A stretch of DNA of 63,839 bases, filler included, from Polymyxa betae A26-41 (Eukaryota; Protista; Endomyxa: Phytomyxea), in assembly GCA_003693705.1 (NCBI GenBank). It is 4 parts of 4 records of this genome, joined end to end, with 100 filler letters (N's around TTAATTAATTAA, not from the genome) between each part and the next. Parts side by side here need not be neighbours in the genome. Positions count along the whole stretch, not along the records: positions 50,982 to 59,521 come from RBZT01000159.1; 3 more parts are not named here. One strand, 5' to 3'. Made by a program: the position numbers and the translations under genes. Below the pieces are notes generated by a model. It had not been told where the DNA came from. It searched no databases and saw only the letters and a program-made list of their open reading frames with translations. Below, one piece after another: positions 50,982 to 59,521 of this stretch. Every line of letters starts with the position of its first letter. Position 1 is the first letter of the stretch.

Positions 50982-52574
50982 CGCGATCGTACCACGGCCC
51001 CTTCTTCTATCACTCCTAATGCGAACATAAATCAGACCTTATTCCGTCCGCAAACGTCGTGTCACCTACAGAGCCGTAGAACACGTAGTCCTGCGCTTGA
51101 AGAAGCGCCGTATACGCTTTATATTAATTGCCAGAAACGGACACGGAGTTCGCGTCACAGGCTCGGATAACTTGCGCTGACCGCAGGAAATTCCGTCAAC
51201 AGGTCCATCGAGAATCACGTCTTTATTATTTTTAGCCGATCCTTCATATATTGACAGTGAAGGACGCCACCCGTTGGCCCAATCCTACAGGGAGTTGAAC
51301 CTTGTACCTTCAAGAGGCTGTCTTTATCCCCTGCTGGTATCGCAGCTTTCTCGAACATCGCGGCTATATATCACAGCCATTCTTCGCAGCTTTTCGTAGC
51401 AGTTTTGCCGTAATTTTGCTATGTTTCCATAATGCGTCGTTGAAATTGAGTTTGCGGACTGGCTGTATTGGCTTCGGAATTTGCCTAGTTTCTGTTGTAG
51501 TTTATGGCAGTGGATTACTAGGTGCTCAAGCGTTTCGCTCTCAGTTGAACAATGTCATGCCCAAGACCCATCAATCAAGGCCAATCCGGCGCGGCCTCCG
51601 ATCCGACAGTCGCGTGCCTGGACACGCACCCGGACTTTAATCCTGTTGTTGTTTCTAACTCTCATTTTCATTCATTCTCAATACAAAGCTCTGGTTCAAC
51701 CCTCCAGAATTTCGTCTCTCATCTCGTACTTTCTTAGCTCTGTGCTTGACAAACAAAAAAGGACATGCGTCATCAGATTCAATTCCAATATTTTTCAGAT
51801 GTGATTTGCATCGAGTATGTCCTGTACGGCCTCGATTCAGGAGCGGTCTGTTGTGTTTTGTTAGGATGGGTCTGGTTTGCAGCACTATTATACCGCATTG
51901 GAATGGATTGCGCTCCGGATATCCATCAAACTGACTCGGTTTGATATCTGTGACTAAGTAGCGCTGCATCCTTTTTCATGCATATTTTCTGAGGTGTAAT
52001 CGATAGGAGCTGAGTACTGGATCATGCTGTGTCAATATTCCATCGGTTATGGCTGTTTTCGCTAATCATGACATTACTTCCTGGAATTGGTGGATACTGT
52101 ATTATTGCGAGCTAATTTGGCGAGAGTTTTTGCACAATCCTTTACAACTGCATTGACATATTGCTGTTTATAAGGGAGAGTAGCAAGTTGCTGTAGATAT
52201 GACAAGAAATCTGAAAATATATGAATTGTTGATTCTTCGGACGCAGTATCTTGTATTCATTAGCTATATACCGTATTGCAGCGCGATGATTTCCATACTG
52301 GATTGAGCCAGGAACAGATCGAAGGGGAACAAAAGTGCTCAAGACCGTTTCGGGCGCATACACGACAAACGCAACGAAACAGGTCCTGGCCGCAAATCAA
52401 GCCTATCAGAACCCTAACCGACCAAAACCCTAGACCATTGGGGTGACCGTCATTTGGAAATCCAACACTTCGAACGTTGGAGCGCTCTACGGCGAACGTA
52501 CTTTATAGAAATACAGAATTATGTGGAATTATCCCGTACTGGCCCTGTGACCCAGCCCAGGGTTGAATACAATA

Positions 52575-53736
52575 CTAAATTCGGATGGCCCAGAATGCCA
52601 TTCGGAATTCATCATCATCATCGAATCGCTCGAGCATATTGCGCCACATAAACTGGATCCAGCTATAGATGGGATCGAGAAGGTTGCTGGGGCGGTCGGT
52701 CGCGTCCACCACTTCGACGTTGATGGTCGCGGCAGCGCCTTGATAGCCACGATCAGCAGCTTCTCGCATTAGTCGTGATAGAAGTTGAGTGGCTAGCAGT
52801 GTGCTCTGTGTGTTGGCGTGAAGTACGACGGTGTTGTCGTTACGTTCGCTTCAATAGTGACGAATAAGAGTACGTTTAGGGTTTAGGGTTCTGTCGCGCT
52901 TACAGTTTCTCTGCGAACGCCACTCCAAGCAATTTGCCTTCCTGATTGATTGAAACAATCCACGGTATCGATAAATCATCCATTCGTTCTCTGATTTCTT
53001 CTGGCGATGCCGTCCACATCAGGTTACTAATCGCTTCGATATCATCTTCACAAGCTTGTCGTAACGGTATCCCGTCGTCTATTGATCCAAGCACAACATC
53101 CTCTGAAACAGATGGAAAACGGTCAGCCTGATCCGAGAGAGATTTCGCCCAAAGTTGTGCCTGAGCCGAAGCGCCGCCTTGGTAGCCCACACGGACCAGT
53201 ACGACGCCCTGGAACCCCATGCGTTCCAATAGCTGGGCATGATCGGAATCATTTGGGTCGATTATAACAACAATCTTCGTATAACCCTCCTTCTGTAGCC
53301 GATTGATAGCTTCAATATAGAGATGCTCTGAAGTAGACACTGATATAGGATCGCTTAACTTTAAGCGAATCGTAGTGCAGTTCGAGTCCGCATAGAGTCG
53401 TTCAGCTGTTATAGAAGCGTCACAATCACAATAGACAAATATAGCGTTGCTGCATGGCTCAGTTACATGGCCAACGTCTTCCTTGCAGCTTTCTGGTCGG
53501 GTACGACGCCATAGCAAAGAATGCTGGGAATGCTGTAAGAGAAGAGGCCCGCAGTAATGAGCCGCTCCGGGCCGATTTGTAAGGCGTGGGGAGAATCGCG
53601 TACCTGCAAGCCATGAGCGCGAATACAGGCTTGATCTTGGAACAGGACAAGGCAATATAGGATTTGTGATGGTGATGGCCACCGTGACGATGACGGCGAA
53701 TAAGGCGCCAGCCAATGCCACCGTGGTGCTCATCAT
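52575..53736 (-). CDS. Secreted tandem GNAT (PAT-like) protein, paralogue A (exons 53736-52904, 52848-52575; about 368 aa)
   Basis: Hydrophobic N-terminus; LQKEGYTKIVVII...LLERMGF; LRQACEDDIEAI...PWIVSINQEGKLLGVAFA. A 55-nt GT-AG intron joins ORF 52900-53736 in frame to ORF 52575-52769. Confidence 0.8.
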
Positions 53737-55658
53737 AGACGAATAATGAGAGTCCGAAATTACTGAAGGGGGGTTCGTTATACAGGATCGGAGTGGGCTG
53801 CGGCCTTTCTTGTCTACATTTAGGATTGGGTTTGGATTCGTCTTCTGTACTGAAGTTCGCTGATCTTGAGCAACAGACGTCGGTGTGCCCTAAATGCATT
53901 CGCTTAGCGTACTCAGGAGTATAGCCGTAATATCTTTCAGTCTCTCACTTCCGATTTCTTAACAGTTCATTATTCTCCCATCCTGCATAGGTAGTGTCGC
54001 CGATTCTAAGCGAGGACGAACACCCGTGTTTAAGAAATTCCAATTCGTCAAGGATCTGATTGATCGTAACATAATCACATTTTTAATACGTCTCTACTGA
54101 AAGTCATGTTGCCCATCTATTGACAAAAGTTTTCAAGTTCAAGAGTCTTATTTCCGGCGTTAGTCTTCAGGAAGGCTGTTAAGATAAGGTGCGTTGGTGT
54201 CCTGCACGCCGTTATGCAAGTGGTTATCGATTAAGTCCCATACAGATAATGTCCTATGGAAACCGCAAAGTAATTAAAATATAGAATCTTTATCGATTTA
54301 TCACCCTATCCGGTGTGTGAGTGTCTCTTGTCCAAGAATCGCTGCCCCTTCCCCGGTTTTTCAGTTTATTTCTTCAGTAAAGGCATTGGAAGTTTATTTT
54401 CGCTTTTTGCTTTGTATCTCTTTGTTAGTGGCCACGGAGTTGGGAAATGATCGTTCCAGTCACGGACTCGACGCGGATTTGGCTACATGTGCTCGATTCA
54501 AATGGAAAGTTTTTCATATTCATGATCATCCCCTTTCTCATCTTAGGGGTTTAAGCTAGGGCTTAGGGTTTCAGTCGATGCTTGATCTCCAGCCCGTCTA
54601 TGGAGCATACTCGTCTTGGGGCTCCTGTTGCAGGCTCCCTCCGCTGGCCGTTTATAGAAATTCAATTTAACCACCTGCTACGGGTGGAGGTGCTCTTACT
54701 CGAGGAATTTTGCCAGATATGAAACGATTGTTGACATGCAATAAACTCATTCAATTTTTCGAACGCAAAACTTTTGAAACCGTTTTTTTTTCATTTTGTT
54801 TTTGAAATTGTGTCAGTGACAAAGGTAATGAGCCATTCTTAAAACATTATTCGAGATTTACAATTTTTCCCGTTTAAAAGCGACAGAAGAAGAACTGAGC
54901 AGATGATCGCATTAGTCTGTAGCAGGAGATGATTGAAATCGGCGATAGGCGACAGCAAGCTGCTTTCGATATTGTCTGTTCGGGCGTATATAGCATTCAC
55001 ACCAATTTTAGATACTCTCCAACCAAAGAGCCACAGCTTGGATATGATTATCTAAGAGAGCACCAGATCAGGATAAAGCGTTTCTGGCAGATTGAACTTC
55101 GAAGACATTGGTTTTGTTTGAATGAAGCAAGCTGTCAGAAGCCCGAATGCGGCGAAGGCAGTGAAGCGGTTTGTAGGAAACCAGTAATGTTACGTCATTC
55201 ATGGACTTGTTATGTTACCCCATTCCGGGGCCGTGGCGACCTTCGAATGCTGAGGACAAGAAGGCGGCTGAATGGGTTAGGCGGCAGCAGACGATCGTGC
55301 CAGGAGGTCTATTTCCGGTTACTGTCTGTTACTGGATAATAACATGATCTCATACCGCTCCAAGTGGCAGAATACTGCTGCGCTCTCATTTTGCGAACCT
55401 GAAGATGTGAGGAAGAGGGGAGTTGAGACAAACGCCTCACGCACAATGCCTGACAGCTGTGTCATACAATAATAATACGTAACAGCTTTTTCATTTTTAT
55501 CCAAGAGACTTTGTGCTATGAGCTCAGATCTTTGTCCCTCTTGTTCCAATTCAGTTTGATACAAATTTCCTACTGAGGCTGACCTAATGTTTAATACGAA
55601 AGAATATTATACACAAAGAGTAATTGTGTTTATTGGTAAACTGCAACGTAGCCAATGT

Positions 55659-56300
55659 TCAGCAATATCGATGCAGATAGAGCATCCAGACTTCACCATC
55701 ACTGGCTTGTTTCGGCAACTTAAAATCGCCGGGTGCAGGCTCTTTCTTGAATCGCAGATATCCAAGAGCCTGACGCAGCTCATTGGCATGGTCGTCGTGC
55801 TGGTCCACGACGACAATGGCCACCTGGTACTTGGTATCGGTCAAGATCTTCATCATCTTGCCGATCAGGCGCTGGATGATCTGGCGGCGCTCGACCTCTT
55901 CAACCAGCACTTCGGGGACGAGCTGGACCAGTTCATAAGTGTGCACGATCGCTTTGATGAGGCCGTACTGGACCGTCTCTTCGTCATTGTTCAAGACGAC
56001 GTACGCGGGCAGCGGATCCTTGCGCTTCGACGGGCATCGCAATTTCGTAGGAGCGGCGACGACGGCGTCGGCGTCGGCGTTGTGCTGGACCCGTTGATGG
56101 GCGACCCGACCGGGAATGTTCTTGAGCACGGCCCGAGGAAGCGACAGACGACGGAACGATGGCGCGAATACGGGAGACGAAGTGGATGGGGCGGCCTGGG
56201 GTCGGATTGGGGTCGACGTCATCAAAGGCAGGGTGAGGTCGGCGGCCGAGGCCAGACCCAGCAGGGCCAGCACGACGCCTAGCGACGATAATGACGACAT
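55659..56300 (-). CDS. Secreted single degenerate GNAT-like protein, paralogue B (213 aa)
   Basis: Clear signal peptide MSSLSSLGVVLALLGLASA; Pro/Ser linker; RLIGKMMKILTDTKYQVAIVVVD...ALGYLRF...WMLYL aligns with the GNAT C-terminal half of A and C. Confidence 0.7.
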   Translation of the reverse strand: MSSLSSLGVVLALLGLASAADLTLPLMTSTPIRPQAAPSTSSPVFAPSFRRLSLPRAVLKNIPGRVAHQRVQHNADADAVVAAPTKLRCPSKRKDPLPAYVVLNNDEETVQYGLIKAIVHTYELVQLVPEVLVEEVERRQIIQRLIGKMMKILTDTKYQVAIVVVDQHDDHANELRQALGYLRFKKEPAPGDFKLPKQASDGEVWMLYLHRYC

Positions 56301-56689
56301 TGGAATGGAGAGATTCAGGGGGGGGGGGGTGTTGGCGATTCAGCGTGGGACTTGATGGATATGATTGGGGAAATAATGACGGAAATATCCACGGACTCCG
56401 CGAACAATCTGCGTGAACGGATCGATATTCTTGAAGGCCCCCTTTCCGACATTGATACTTATAATCAACATTGACAATCATCGGACCTTAGCAGGTAGTT
56501 CATTTGCCCCCTTCAGTGATATAACGTTCAAATTCATATCTTTTATCATATTCTGATAAAGATCTAGAATAAAGTCTTCGAGCCCTTCATTATCTGAAGC
56601 ATTATGAAAATTCTCGTCATTTTATTTGATTGTTATAGCGGAGTAGCCGAGTAGGCATCGTGCGCTATGGTATTCTGTCCGAACAATGT

Positions 56690-57931
56690 TTATTGCGTTA
56701 GACGACGACGTTCCGAGCTCCAATTCCTGGGTTGTGGAAGTTTGAGCCGATCACAGTAATAGTTCATGAGATCAAACTGCATGAACTGTAACGAACTCCA
56801 GTGATCAGATCCAGTATCAATATCATCAATAACTCCGGATCTTTTGAACCCAATCTCTTCGTACATTCGAATATCATCGTCGTGGGCCAGCTCGACCTGG
56901 ACCACGGCGGTCGCATATCCCAGCTGACTCAATGACCGCAATAGGACCTTGTAGATACGGGGTAACGCCCATTTGGAATCCACATGACGTGAAACGTGAA
57001 CGTTACAGAGAGCAGCCCATTTGTAACCCCAGAAACGTGTGGCGAACGCACACCCGACTGTATCGTTATGCTCATCACAGGCCAGTATCCACGGTAACGA
57101 TAGATCGCCCATCTGGCGCTTAATCGTCTGTGTGTAGGGGCAAGTACGGGCCGTAACCGAGTCCGGATTGATGCGAGGCTGGTAGATGTAACGAATAGTG
57201 GAGGCATCACAGTCGGCAGCAGATCGAAAGAATAGTTCGGGTTTACGTTGCGGGAAGAGATCGCTGTGAGCCGAACGGGTAACGTGATCATCTGAGCCGT
57301 GATCGTCACGTAAACGTAACGAGAAGATCTGTGCGTCTTTCCAGGCCCCTTTGACATAGTCCACATAGCGTAACATAGCACCTTGTACAAAGCCGAGCTG
57401 CTGTAACAGAATCACTTCCAGAATGTTGAAAGGATCCGTAGCGATAACAACGGTAGTGTAACGTTCACGGCGTAGAGCGTCGATAGCGTCAACTAGAAGA
57501 TCTTCGCAGTTCGGGTAGGAATCGTAAAAACTATCACAGACGAAACCCAGCCTGACTGCATCGTTACATGGAGCAGGACTGGTCGTAACGTGTTCAGCAG
57601 TAATGGTAACTTCGGCATTTTTGACGATTATAACGGGAGTTGTAGCTGTGGAAACTGTACTGCGAAGATCTCGGGTCGGCGTTTGAACCGCGACTTTCTC
57701 CTCGGCTCGGAATCGGTCTGGAAGGGATTGGGCGCGGACCAGGAGCCCGCCCGGGAGCGGTCGATGACGTCTAGGGCGAAGGTGGTGGCAGATGGCGGCG
57801 CCGGCCGGGGCGGTGAAGGAGCGGTCTAAGGTCGGGACACTGCCTGACAAGGGTCTGGAAGCGGTCAGCGATGGCTGGGCCTTAACCGAGACGACAATGG
57901 TGATGATTAGTAGGAGAGATGATAGAGACAT
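56690..57931 (-). CDS. Secreted tandem GNAT (PAT-like) protein, paralogue C (413 aa from ATG 57931)
   Basis: Signal MSLSSLLLIITIVVSVKA. Domain 1 ends LGFVQGAMLRYVDYVKGAWKD. Domain 2 reads FRSAADCDASTIRYIY...PWILA...VGCAFA...YKWAALCNVHVS...IYKVLLRSLSQLGY...MYEEIGFKRSG...W...QF. Confidence 0.85.
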   Translation of the reverse strand: MSLSSLLLIITIVVSVKAQPSLTASRPLSGSVPTLDRSFTAPAGAAICHHLRPRRHRPLPGGLLVRAQSLPDRFRAEEKVAVQTPTRDLRSTVSTATTPVIIVKNAEVTITAEHVTTSPAPCNDAVRLGFVCDSFYDSYPNCEDLLVDAIDALRRERYTTVVIATDPFNILEVILLQQLGFVQGAMLRYVDYVKGAWKDAQIFSLRLRDDHGSDDHVTRSAHSDLFPQRKPELFFRSAADCDASTIRYIYQPRINPDSVTARTCPYTQTIKRQMGDLSLPWILACDEHNDTVGCAFATRFWGYKWAALCNVHVSRHVDSKWALPRIYKVLLRSLSQLGYATAVVQVELAHDDDIRMYEEIGFKRSGVIDDIDTGSDHWSSLQFMQFDLMNYYCDRLKLPQPRNWSSERRRLTQ

Positions 57932-59521
57932 AGTGTGTGATGACGTGATGGAGGCGACCTCTTTGACAAGAATAGTCTCAGACGTGTCAATGAGCAATCA
58001 TGAGAGAGCGAAACACTGCGCGCAGTTTCTTCAGGACCCACCTGCGTCACGCAGATTCCGGAAAAACTCCTGAAAAAGAACCCAACAAGGAGGTTTTTAG
58101 TGATTACATTGCTTAAACAACACACACGACTTAAATTTTTGCTAAAAATATTTTGTGTTCTGAAGCTTAGTAGCTACCAATGATGAAGGTCGCAGAAGGG
58201 TGGCAAGAGGCGTCGTGCTGGCTCCTAATCTGCAGCAGAAGTACAGATCTAGGTATTTGGTAGCAATCTTATATTGGAAAGAAACACAACGATGAGAAGA
58301 TTCTGCTATCACATACCGTCATACGACCCGATTACTGTATATAGTGAATGCGAGGAATCTCAGGCTCTGTGCTTAACCAGCGATTAGATGCGGAAAGTAT
58401 GAAGCTTTGTCAAAACGCTCCAAACATCTCCAGCTACTATACCTAACTGTTCAGCACTGAAAGCAGGCTTGTCTCATTGTGATCAATCAATAAAGATAAT
58501 CGCTAGGTAACGGCATGTGAATCATCAACCGGTGCCAGGAAATGTTTACATGAGCTTATGGTGATTGAATACGGAATATTGCACAGGGGAGAATTATGAA
58601 TCTGCCAATTGATGGCTTCTCACGGGACCAGTAGTCCAGTACGGCCCAGCAATACACTCAAGATCAAAGCGAACAGATATTGAGAATTGAATCGGCAGCC
58701 TGGGCAGGTCACAGACCCAGCATCGTCAATAGCTGAGAGCATCTCACATACCAGAGTCACATACAGCCACTTCCAATGGAGCCGTACAACCGATCCACCA
58801 TCGGTCCGGTACGACCTGCGTGACCTGGGATGTCGATACCATCTTGATAAAGTTTCTGGTTAGGACAGGATCCGCTTGAGGACTGAAAGTAGACGTAAGC
58901 CAGCATCGTTACGTATGGAATTCATATGGATGATTTATTGCTCAACCGATAGTTAGGGCTGTTCAGAATGGGTCGCATCGAATCTTTAGAAAACGACGAT
59001 CCCTCTATGAAGATATCAGGTCGCAATTCAGATCCTTATCAAGGGAAATGTTCCAAACAACAAAACATCTCTATAATCAGCCTGTAATTTTCAATATAAA
59101 TTGTTTAATGAAAGTTGCCCTGACAAAGTTGCGGCGGGATGGGATTCATTCGGCCTATCAGCGGAAGGCTTCTCAATACCCAACGATATGAGATTCTGAA
59201 CAGAGCAAGAATGACAATTTTCGAACAGTCATGACAGCCTGCTTTCCCATTAAAATCTCCAGCATGCGATGACGACCAATCCCGATCTTAATCTGGCACA
59301 CAAAGGTCATTGGGCGGGGCCTCCCTGTGTTCGAGGATCGACACTGACGTCGCCAAGACTGACTCTGGCGTCGTTGAGGCTGGCTCCGATTGAGTCACAC
59401 TGATTGGGCATGCGACTGAGGGCTCGTCGTCGATGCCATCATTGCTGTCGATCGAATAAACCTCACTCCTTAAAACACTCTGAATCGACTAACACAACTA
59501 GATTAAGAGTCCCAGCTCTCT

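Follow-up and report, generated by a model that had tools for sequence, protein, structure and literature searches.

Three neighbouring genes of Polymyxa betae A26-41 (assembly GCA_003693705.1), here called A, B and C, are judged somewhat more probably than otherwise (about 0.55) to encode exported GNAT-fold pseudoenzymes that act by binding, and are candidate effectors of a host-associated microbe. The genes lie within 52575-57931 of the window, i.e. the whole stretch of DNA analysed (63,839 nucleotides, filler included); the region examined was positions 50982-59521, the part of the window from RBZT01000159.1, with ~47% G+C. The original prediction had described three co-oriented genes in 5.4 kb, each encoding a signal peptide, a Pro/Ser/Arg-rich linker and then GNAT module(s) resembling phosphinothricin acetyltransferase (PAT), two in A and C and one in B. 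Open reading frames (ORFs) and transcript contigs bear out the three genes and place all of them on the minus strand. The predicted architecture was recovered as a signal-like N-terminus by rule-based assessment, the Pro/Ser/Arg-rich linker and the PAT-like module(s), and the domain counts stand in that each module outscored all of its shuffled counterparts with a hidden Markov model (HMM) made from PAT-type enzymes only. On these data A, B and C form a candidate effector family that appears to be undescribed.

Ancestry, fold and active site of the GNAT modules

Exon 1 of A aligned with C over ~210 residues at 28% identity (BLASTP E 5e-17). The paralogy of the two genes had been claimed from shared motifs, and every one of these was found (ITAE/ITAE, MDDLSIPWIV/MGDLSLPWIL, GVAFA/GCAFA and WIQFM/SLQFM), together with HVDSKWALPRIY. 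B matched A and C weakly in pairwise comparison (BLASTP E 0.01-0.05). Gene A was handled exon by exon in every search and score.

Domain 2 of C had been likened to the PAT/Bar-YncA enzymes, and the likeness was upheld: residues 225-389 of C matched PAT structures in a phmmer search of the PDB (ArsN 5jtf, E 2.4e-10; BAR 5t7d, E 3e-9). When C was scanned exhaustively with HMMER against 1.84 billion representatives, 125 matches were returned, essentially all of them PAT/YncA-type proteins that align to this region. Forty PAT/YncA-type enzymes from these matches, window sequences excluded, were used to build the PAT-only HMM, and each piece of A, B and C was compared with 1000 shuffles of itself. 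Domain 2 of C scored 93.7 bits (best shuffle 8.9) and domain 1 of C 23.5 bits (8.0). Domain 1 of A scored 28.5 bits (4.3), the exon-1 part of domain 2 of A 16.0 bits (4.1), exon 2 of A 10.6 bits (5.1) and B 15.3 bits (7.4). Scores so far above those of the shuffles indicate that all five proposed modules are PAT-related.

Profile comparisons with hhalign against the C-terminal half of PAT gave a probability of 93% and E 3e-7 for domain 1 of A (residues 136-206) and a probability of 89.6% and E 1.9e-6 for domain 1 of C. A profile of these two first domains found the PAT structure 2jlm as its first match among 177,635 PDB sequences (E 3.5e-4). B on its own reached an hhalign probability of 16% against the PAT profile. 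Pfam matches of C were below the gathering score for both Acetyltransf_4 (17.4 versus 24.3 bits) and Acetyltransf_1 (14.5 versus 20.7 bits), and the Pfam GNAT models gave zero matches to A and B.

Searches with structure models against PAT and YncA, one of the checks proposed with the original prediction, found the GNAT fold in both domains of C and, with moderate scores, in B. An AlphaFold2 model of C, computed from an alignment of the PAT matches, had a predicted local distance difference test score (pLDDT) above 90 in domain 2, and domain 1 was poorly modelled. Foldseek aligned the domain 2 model with ArsN, BAR and YncA at target-normalised template modelling (TM) scores of 0.8-0.86. The ESM Atlas contains C letter for letter with an alignment-free model of its own, in which residues 94-221 matched GNAT/YncA clusters at TM 0.68-0.75 over 112-126 residues. 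In this model domain 1 of C is a GNAT core without the N-terminal β1-α1-α2 arm. The first domains of A and C span β2 to β7 only, and domain 2 of C can be aligned over the whole GNAT domain. The hhalign matches and, for C, the Atlas model thus agree with the claim that the first domains lack their N-terminal part.

B is the weakest case, and is GNAT-like with less certainty than the other modules. Residues 60-213, modelled by AlphaFold2 with a PAT-containing alignment, had a pLDDT of 71.5 and the strand-helix order of GNATs, and the model resembled GNATs at Foldseek TMq 0.55-0.68, VIA-align Z 12-13 and Atlas TM ~0.7. Even the poor model of B held by the ESM Atlas itself matched GNATs, at TM 0.42-0.49.

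In BAR, Glu88 is the general base, His137 and Tyr107 form the oxyanion hole and Ser133 positions His137, the S133A variant being inactive; the substrate is bound by Phe36, Lys78, Arg80, Tyr83 and Tyr92, and the PAT active sites lie at the interface of a homodimer (bioRxiv 10.1101/122184). Residue states were mapped to BAR numbering via alignments. Domain 2 of C has Leu for Glu88, Tyr for His137, Asp for Ser133, His for Tyr92 and Ala for Phe36, and a 3-residue deletion removes Lys78-Arg80; Tyr83 and Tyr107 are kept. The loop glycine Gly101, ~90% conserved, is Trp. The acetyl-CoA pyrophosphate loop Q/RxxGxG is absent from all five modules, neither loop Gly being retained in any of them, and at the loop position (Q/R-x-x-G-x-G/A) domain 2 of C reads D-S-K-W-A-L. 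Domain 2 of A lacks ~12 residues around α4, among them the 'H..LGF' turn, which is preserved in the other four modules; an Asp perhaps lies near its general-base column, where the alignment is not confident. The erosion of the acetyl-CoA motif in all five domains was therefore confirmed, and in domain 2 of C it extends to the catalytic residues. These losses and the sub-threshold Pfam scores support, but do not prove, a non-catalytic state.

Gene models, N-termini and transcripts

The features of the locus are listed in Table 1. Translation of gene A starts at the ATG at 53736 and is interrupted by a single 55-nt GT..AG intron (donor 52903/52902). A tBLASTn search of 50982-59521 with A, B and C did not find a fourth paralogue. 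Composition and codon use of the three genes are compatible with Spongospora.

Table 1. Genes, assembled transcripts and protein segments of the A-B-C cluster (window positions)
Feature	Position	Strand	Description	Basis
Gene A	52575-53736	-	Exon 1 53736-52904, intron 52903-52849, exon 2 52848-52578, stop 52577-52575	ORFs, sequence, spliced contigs
A N-terminus (residues 1-24)	53665-53736	-	Signal peptide or signal anchor; apolar uncharged run	Rule-based
A domain 1	53119-53469	-	PAT-like GNAT module without N-terminal part	hhalign, PAT-only HMM, 2jlm match
A domain 2	52623-53064	-	Intron-split, most eroded module; aligns with C domain 2	Two HMM parts in consecutive register
Gene B	Coding 56300-55662, stop 55661-55659	-	213 residues	Single ORF
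B mRNA as assembled	55607-56311	-	T10 loose end on X3 contig	X3 contig 55607-56311; X7 contig 55638-56309
B predicted signal peptide (residues 1-19)	56244-56300	-	Site ASA/AD	Rule-based
B module (residues ~96-211)	55668-56015	-	GNAT-like, without cofactor loop	
Gene C	Coding 57931-56693, stop 56692-56690	-	413 residues from first ATG	Single ORF
C mRNA as assembled	56602-58051	-	T12 loose end on X3 contig	X3 contig 56602-57958; X7 contigs reach 58051
C predicted signal peptide (residues 1-18)	57878-57931	-	Site VKA/QP	Rule-based
C domain 1	57269-57652	-	GNAT fold without β1-α1-α2	
C domain 2	56699-57241	-	Full-length PAT/YncA-type fold, catalytic and cofactor residues replaced	

N-termini were assessed by rules for the n- and h-regions, Kyte-Doolittle hydropathy and -3/-1 cleavage sites. 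B and C have a short polar n-region, an h-region of 13-14 residues (13 in B) and an Ala-x-Ala-type site. In A, residues 1-24 contain a 19-residue window with a Kyte-Doolittle value of 2.48, which is transmembrane-like, and the -3/-1 sites are weak. No further hydrophobic segments follow the N-terminus in any of the three proteins. By these rules B and C would be secreted, and A would be either secreted or membrane-anchored. Each signal is followed by a linker of ~70 residues in which Pro, Ser, Thr, Arg and Ala make up 46-56%, and the linkers are probably disordered. The signal-plus-linker regions of the three proteins align loosely with one another, which hints that signal and linker were gained once.

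Contigs of the public runs X3 and X7, which come from different studies, behave like transcript assemblies, and both runs are termed RNA-like here. Absence of expression had been named as grounds for abandoning the original prediction; transcripts of A, B and C were present in both runs, with coverage mostly limited to these genes and similarly modest for all three. In each run one contig omits precisely 52849-52903; the ends of the omitted stretch read CT..AC on the plus strand and GT..AG on that of the gene. Runs of T immediately before 55607 (T10) and 56602 (T12) represent the poly(A) tails of minus-strand mRNAs of B and C. Transcription is thus shown for all three genes, the modelled splice for A, and polyadenylation for B and C. 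There were no coding differences between the window and the X3 and X7 contigs. Two raw-read RNA runs contributed no reads from this locus and are uninformative about its expression.

Upstream of A, at 53840-54188, both runs have contigs at a depth of ~8-9 (X3, 53991-54176; X7, 53840-54188). The interval contains no ORF that matches Pfam, and its lower edge lacks a splice donor. It may represent a short transcript of its own, or else a long 5' untranslated region of A whose coverage is interrupted. Between A and B, two isolated 151-nt X3 contigs (54554-54704 and 55111-55261, depth 2.2-2.6) probably represent unspliced or stray reads and not a gene.

Relatives, origin and known systems

Full-length word-based searches of a collection of 5.8 billion clusters found no protein of comparable length resembling C or B. 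A full-length search with a profile of C and its Spongospora relative (below) returned that Spongospora protein only. No relative was detected in JGI metagenome contigs by a scan with the C protein or by exact 30-mer, and look-ups of the exact B and C products gave no match. The proposal that the proteins belong to no described family is in keeping with this absence of a full-length relative among billions of database proteins. The top representative match, a repeat-rich bacterial surface-type protein of 1982 residues (P0001), was rejected as a homologue: an unrelated unit of ~60 residues resembles C 158-222 by chance, and its score was summed 11 times. Summed repeat scores can, as this case illustrates, outrank those of true homologues.

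Two eukaryotic proteins were found among the matches of C, both from plasmodiophorid plant pathogens; no eukaryotic protein was closer to C than these. Plasmodiophora brassicae PBRA_000150 (184 residues) keeps every catalytic and cofactor residue (Glu, Ser, His and the QRQGLG loop). Spongospora subterranea CRZ08934.1 (435 residues, without a signal peptide) has two PAT modules, as does C, with which it aligns collinearly (E 1e-7); its first module matches domain 2 of C at E 3e-13. In this protein (Logan contig SRR24080059_4756, L001:66-1373), module 1 keeps QRQGLG, Ser and His and has Cys at the general-base position, and module 2 is degenerate. Judged by sequence, the Spongospora protein seems to occupy an intermediate position between the window proteins and the intact Plasmodiophora PAT. 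The plasmodiophorid homologues share an 'MG.L..PW' stretch with C, but differ from it in lacking a signal peptide and in keeping the QRQGLG loop, and they are no more than 25-32% identical to it.

The original prediction had suggested derivation from a bacterial enzyme and proposed a phylogeny as a check. Domain 2 of C was placed without a supported neighbour in both trees, on an end branch longer than 4 changes per site, so that neither a bacterial nor a eukaryotic donor can be named. The Spongospora and Plasmodiophora sequences grouped together (support 97/87), and the unconstrained tree did not join domain 2 of C to them. Forcing it into a clade with the plasmodiophorid proteins cost 5.95 log-likelihood units and was not rejected by the approximately unbiased (AU) test (p 0.36). 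Bacterial derivation was consequently not borne out, given the unresolved trees, the existence of cytosolic plasmodiophorid PATs and this AU result, and descent from a PAT gene of the lineage itself appears at least as likely.

Comparison with the PAT family (BAR, PAT, ArsN and YncA/MddA; Acetyltransf_4 type) shows an end-to-end alignment and a common modelled fold for domain 2 of C, and matches to the same profile, in register, for the remaining modules. Unlike the PAT enzymes, the window proteins carry a predicted signal and a linker, and their modules are truncated or arranged in tandem; the modules also lack Q/RxxGxG and fall below the Pfam thresholds, and domain 2 of C lacks the equivalents of Glu88, His137 and Ser133. 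Two GNAT lobes in one chain, as in A and C, are also found in VipF, a delivered effector of Legionella, and in MshD, where the N-terminal lobe is degenerate, the C-terminal lobe is active and both lobes bind acetyl-CoA (PMC10936415). A and C differ from these proteins in that both lobes are loop-less, the first is truncated and the second is without catalytic and cofactor residues, the catalytic states of the second lobe being those of domain 2 of C. Hg-GLAND1 of cyst nematodes is a secreted GNAT candidate effector with a signal peptide before the GNAT domain (PMC4828791). Unlike the window proteins, it belongs to the GNAT family 'FAM7', its single domain is seen by Pfam and InterPro, and there is good support for its origin from bacteria.

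Ornithine decarboxylase antizyme acts by binding, without catalysis, and its fold is related to that of GNATs. The nearest protein-language-model neighbours of B were antizyme clusters (23 of 30 matches; score 0.91, ~200 of 256 features). B was nevertheless rejected as a true antizyme: PF02100 did not match at a cut-off as loose as E 10, there is no +1 frameshift, and its structural matches include no antizyme. Unlike antizyme, it is encoded by a single unbroken ORF, contained in one mRNA contig, and has a predicted signal peptide. Antizyme may serve as an analogy for the working mode of a B-like module, and not as its family.

The text and 12 supplements of a structure-guided secretome survey of Spongospora, Plasmodiophora and Polymyxa contain no GNAT/acetyltransferase cluster. 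Literature searches likewise yielded no description of a secreted PAT-derived family, or of one in which every cofactor motif has been erased.

Possible function of the proteins and minor features of the locus

Loss of the loop and of catalytic residues makes non-catalytic GNAT-fold proteins the most likely interpretation. A PAT/YncA-type amino-acid N-acetyltransferase would have given rise to a small tandem cluster of lineage-specific paralogues, each gene encoding an endoplasmic reticulum-targeting signal, the ~70-residue linker and then the GNAT module(s). A and C would combine a truncated module with a full one in a pseudo-dimer layout like that of the tandem GNATs, and B would have a single truncated module. 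With the pyrophosphate-binding loop lost from all modules, and the general base, the oxyanion His and its positioning Ser lost as well from domain 2 of C, the exported proteins would bind a ligand or a protein at what used to be the substrate cleft or the dimer face. In A and C the truncated lobe probably packs on the full lobe as in the PAT homodimer, the cleft being kept for binding and not for acetylation. Tandem GNATs with a non-catalytic lobe (VipF and MshD) and the secreted GNAT candidate Hg-GLAND1 would be precedents by analogy. Secretion, the loss of activity, the binding mode and the host target are what we infer.

Some points weigh against this reading. GNATs bind coenzyme A largely via backbone amides, so loss of the consensus residues is not proof that acetyl-CoA binding has been lost. 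The N-terminus of A could be a membrane or signal anchor instead of a cleaved signal, and the assignment of B leans partly on a model guided by a multiple sequence alignment. No orthologues of A, B or C were found. Finally, Glu88 mutants of BAR lose activity, yet keep activity on tryptophan (bioRxiv 10.1101/122184).

A more specific version of the binding hypothesis is tentative, and more probably wrong than right. A cytosolic, detoxifying PAT of the protist itself may have been duplicated in tandem, shortened at the N-terminus and provided with a signal peptide, losing its cofactor binding completely, and so have become a new family of secreted effectors; the products might sequester a host enzyme or an amino-acid-like metabolite in the manner of antizyme, with B as the minimal single-module form.

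It is unlikely, although worth serious attention, that A, B and C serve the biology of the organism itself as proteins of the secretory pathway or surface (cell or spore wall, vesicles, or a membrane-anchored A) and are not directed at a host. The anchor-like N-terminus of A would suit such a role; no host-translocation motif was identified in the three proteins, their coverage is similar and modest in the two RNA-like data sets, and nothing ties them to infection. On the other hand, orphan, fast-diverging, clustered and signal-bearing paralogues are typical of effector families, and the RNA-like sets are filed under organism labels other than those of the DNA runs of the genome, as would fit mixed host-microbe samples.

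Rather improbable is that the proteins are secreted enzymes which still transfer acyl groups, using a cofactor site of non-canonical type and acting on a new substrate. Such activity would be in line with the complete, confidently modelled GNAT fold of domain 2 of C, its retention of BAR Tyr107 and Tyr83, and the possible Asp near the general-base column of domain 2 of A, where confidence in the alignment is lacking. Activity in tandem GNATs usually resides in the C-terminal lobe (PMC10936415), and the Glu88 mutants of BAR retain some activity (bioRxiv 10.1101/122184). Against this, both loop glycines are gone in 5/5 modules, with Trp at the conserved Gly in domain 2 of C, and the Pfam GNAT models remain under threshold (17.4 versus 24.3 bits). 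The same domain lacks the substrate-binding Phe36 and the Lys78/Arg80 stretch, and has replaced both His137 and Ser133, the latter being a position at which substitution by Ala leaves BAR dead (bioRxiv 10.1101/122184).

That A, B and C are decaying PAT-gene duplicates, transcribed but functionless, is very unlikely: extreme divergence (the end branch of domain 2 of C), progressive erosion (the α4 residues missing from domain 2 of A) and the failure to find orthologues would be expected of decay, but all three genes have intact frames of 213-413 codons, the intron of A is precisely spliced, the mRNAs are polyadenylated, core motifs (the LGF/LGY turn and Y/F-rich strands) persist in 4/5 modules despite ~28% identity, and both independent RNA-like sets are free of coding differences.

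Secreted GNAT-fold proteins are rare among the effectors of eukaryotic pathogens. If A, B and C are host-directed, they would represent a clear case of an enzyme turned pseudoenzyme effector, with intermediates visible in the intact Plasmodiophora PAT and the half-degenerate Spongospora tandem PAT; if they are not, they would neatly illustrate the neofunctionalisation or decay of duplicated GNATs. Being small, soluble-looking and expressed, they are easy targets for binding and structure studies.

Flanking ORFs gave zero Pfam matches, and 50982-59521 gave zero Rfam matches. A 21-nt inverted repeat at 51004/52764 was dismissed as a chance occurrence. The intron of gene A contains two tandem copies of CCCTAAA (52874-52888), the complement of the telomere-type or 'telo-box' unit TTTAGGG, and TTAGGG-like fragments lie just downstream of the gene at ~52400-52440. 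Third-position G+C is 0.72 in B versus 0.53 in C and 0.47-0.57 in A, all inside 5 kb. An antisense ORF of 231 residues opposite B (55587-56282, plus strand) is probably a by-product of this third-position bias in B.

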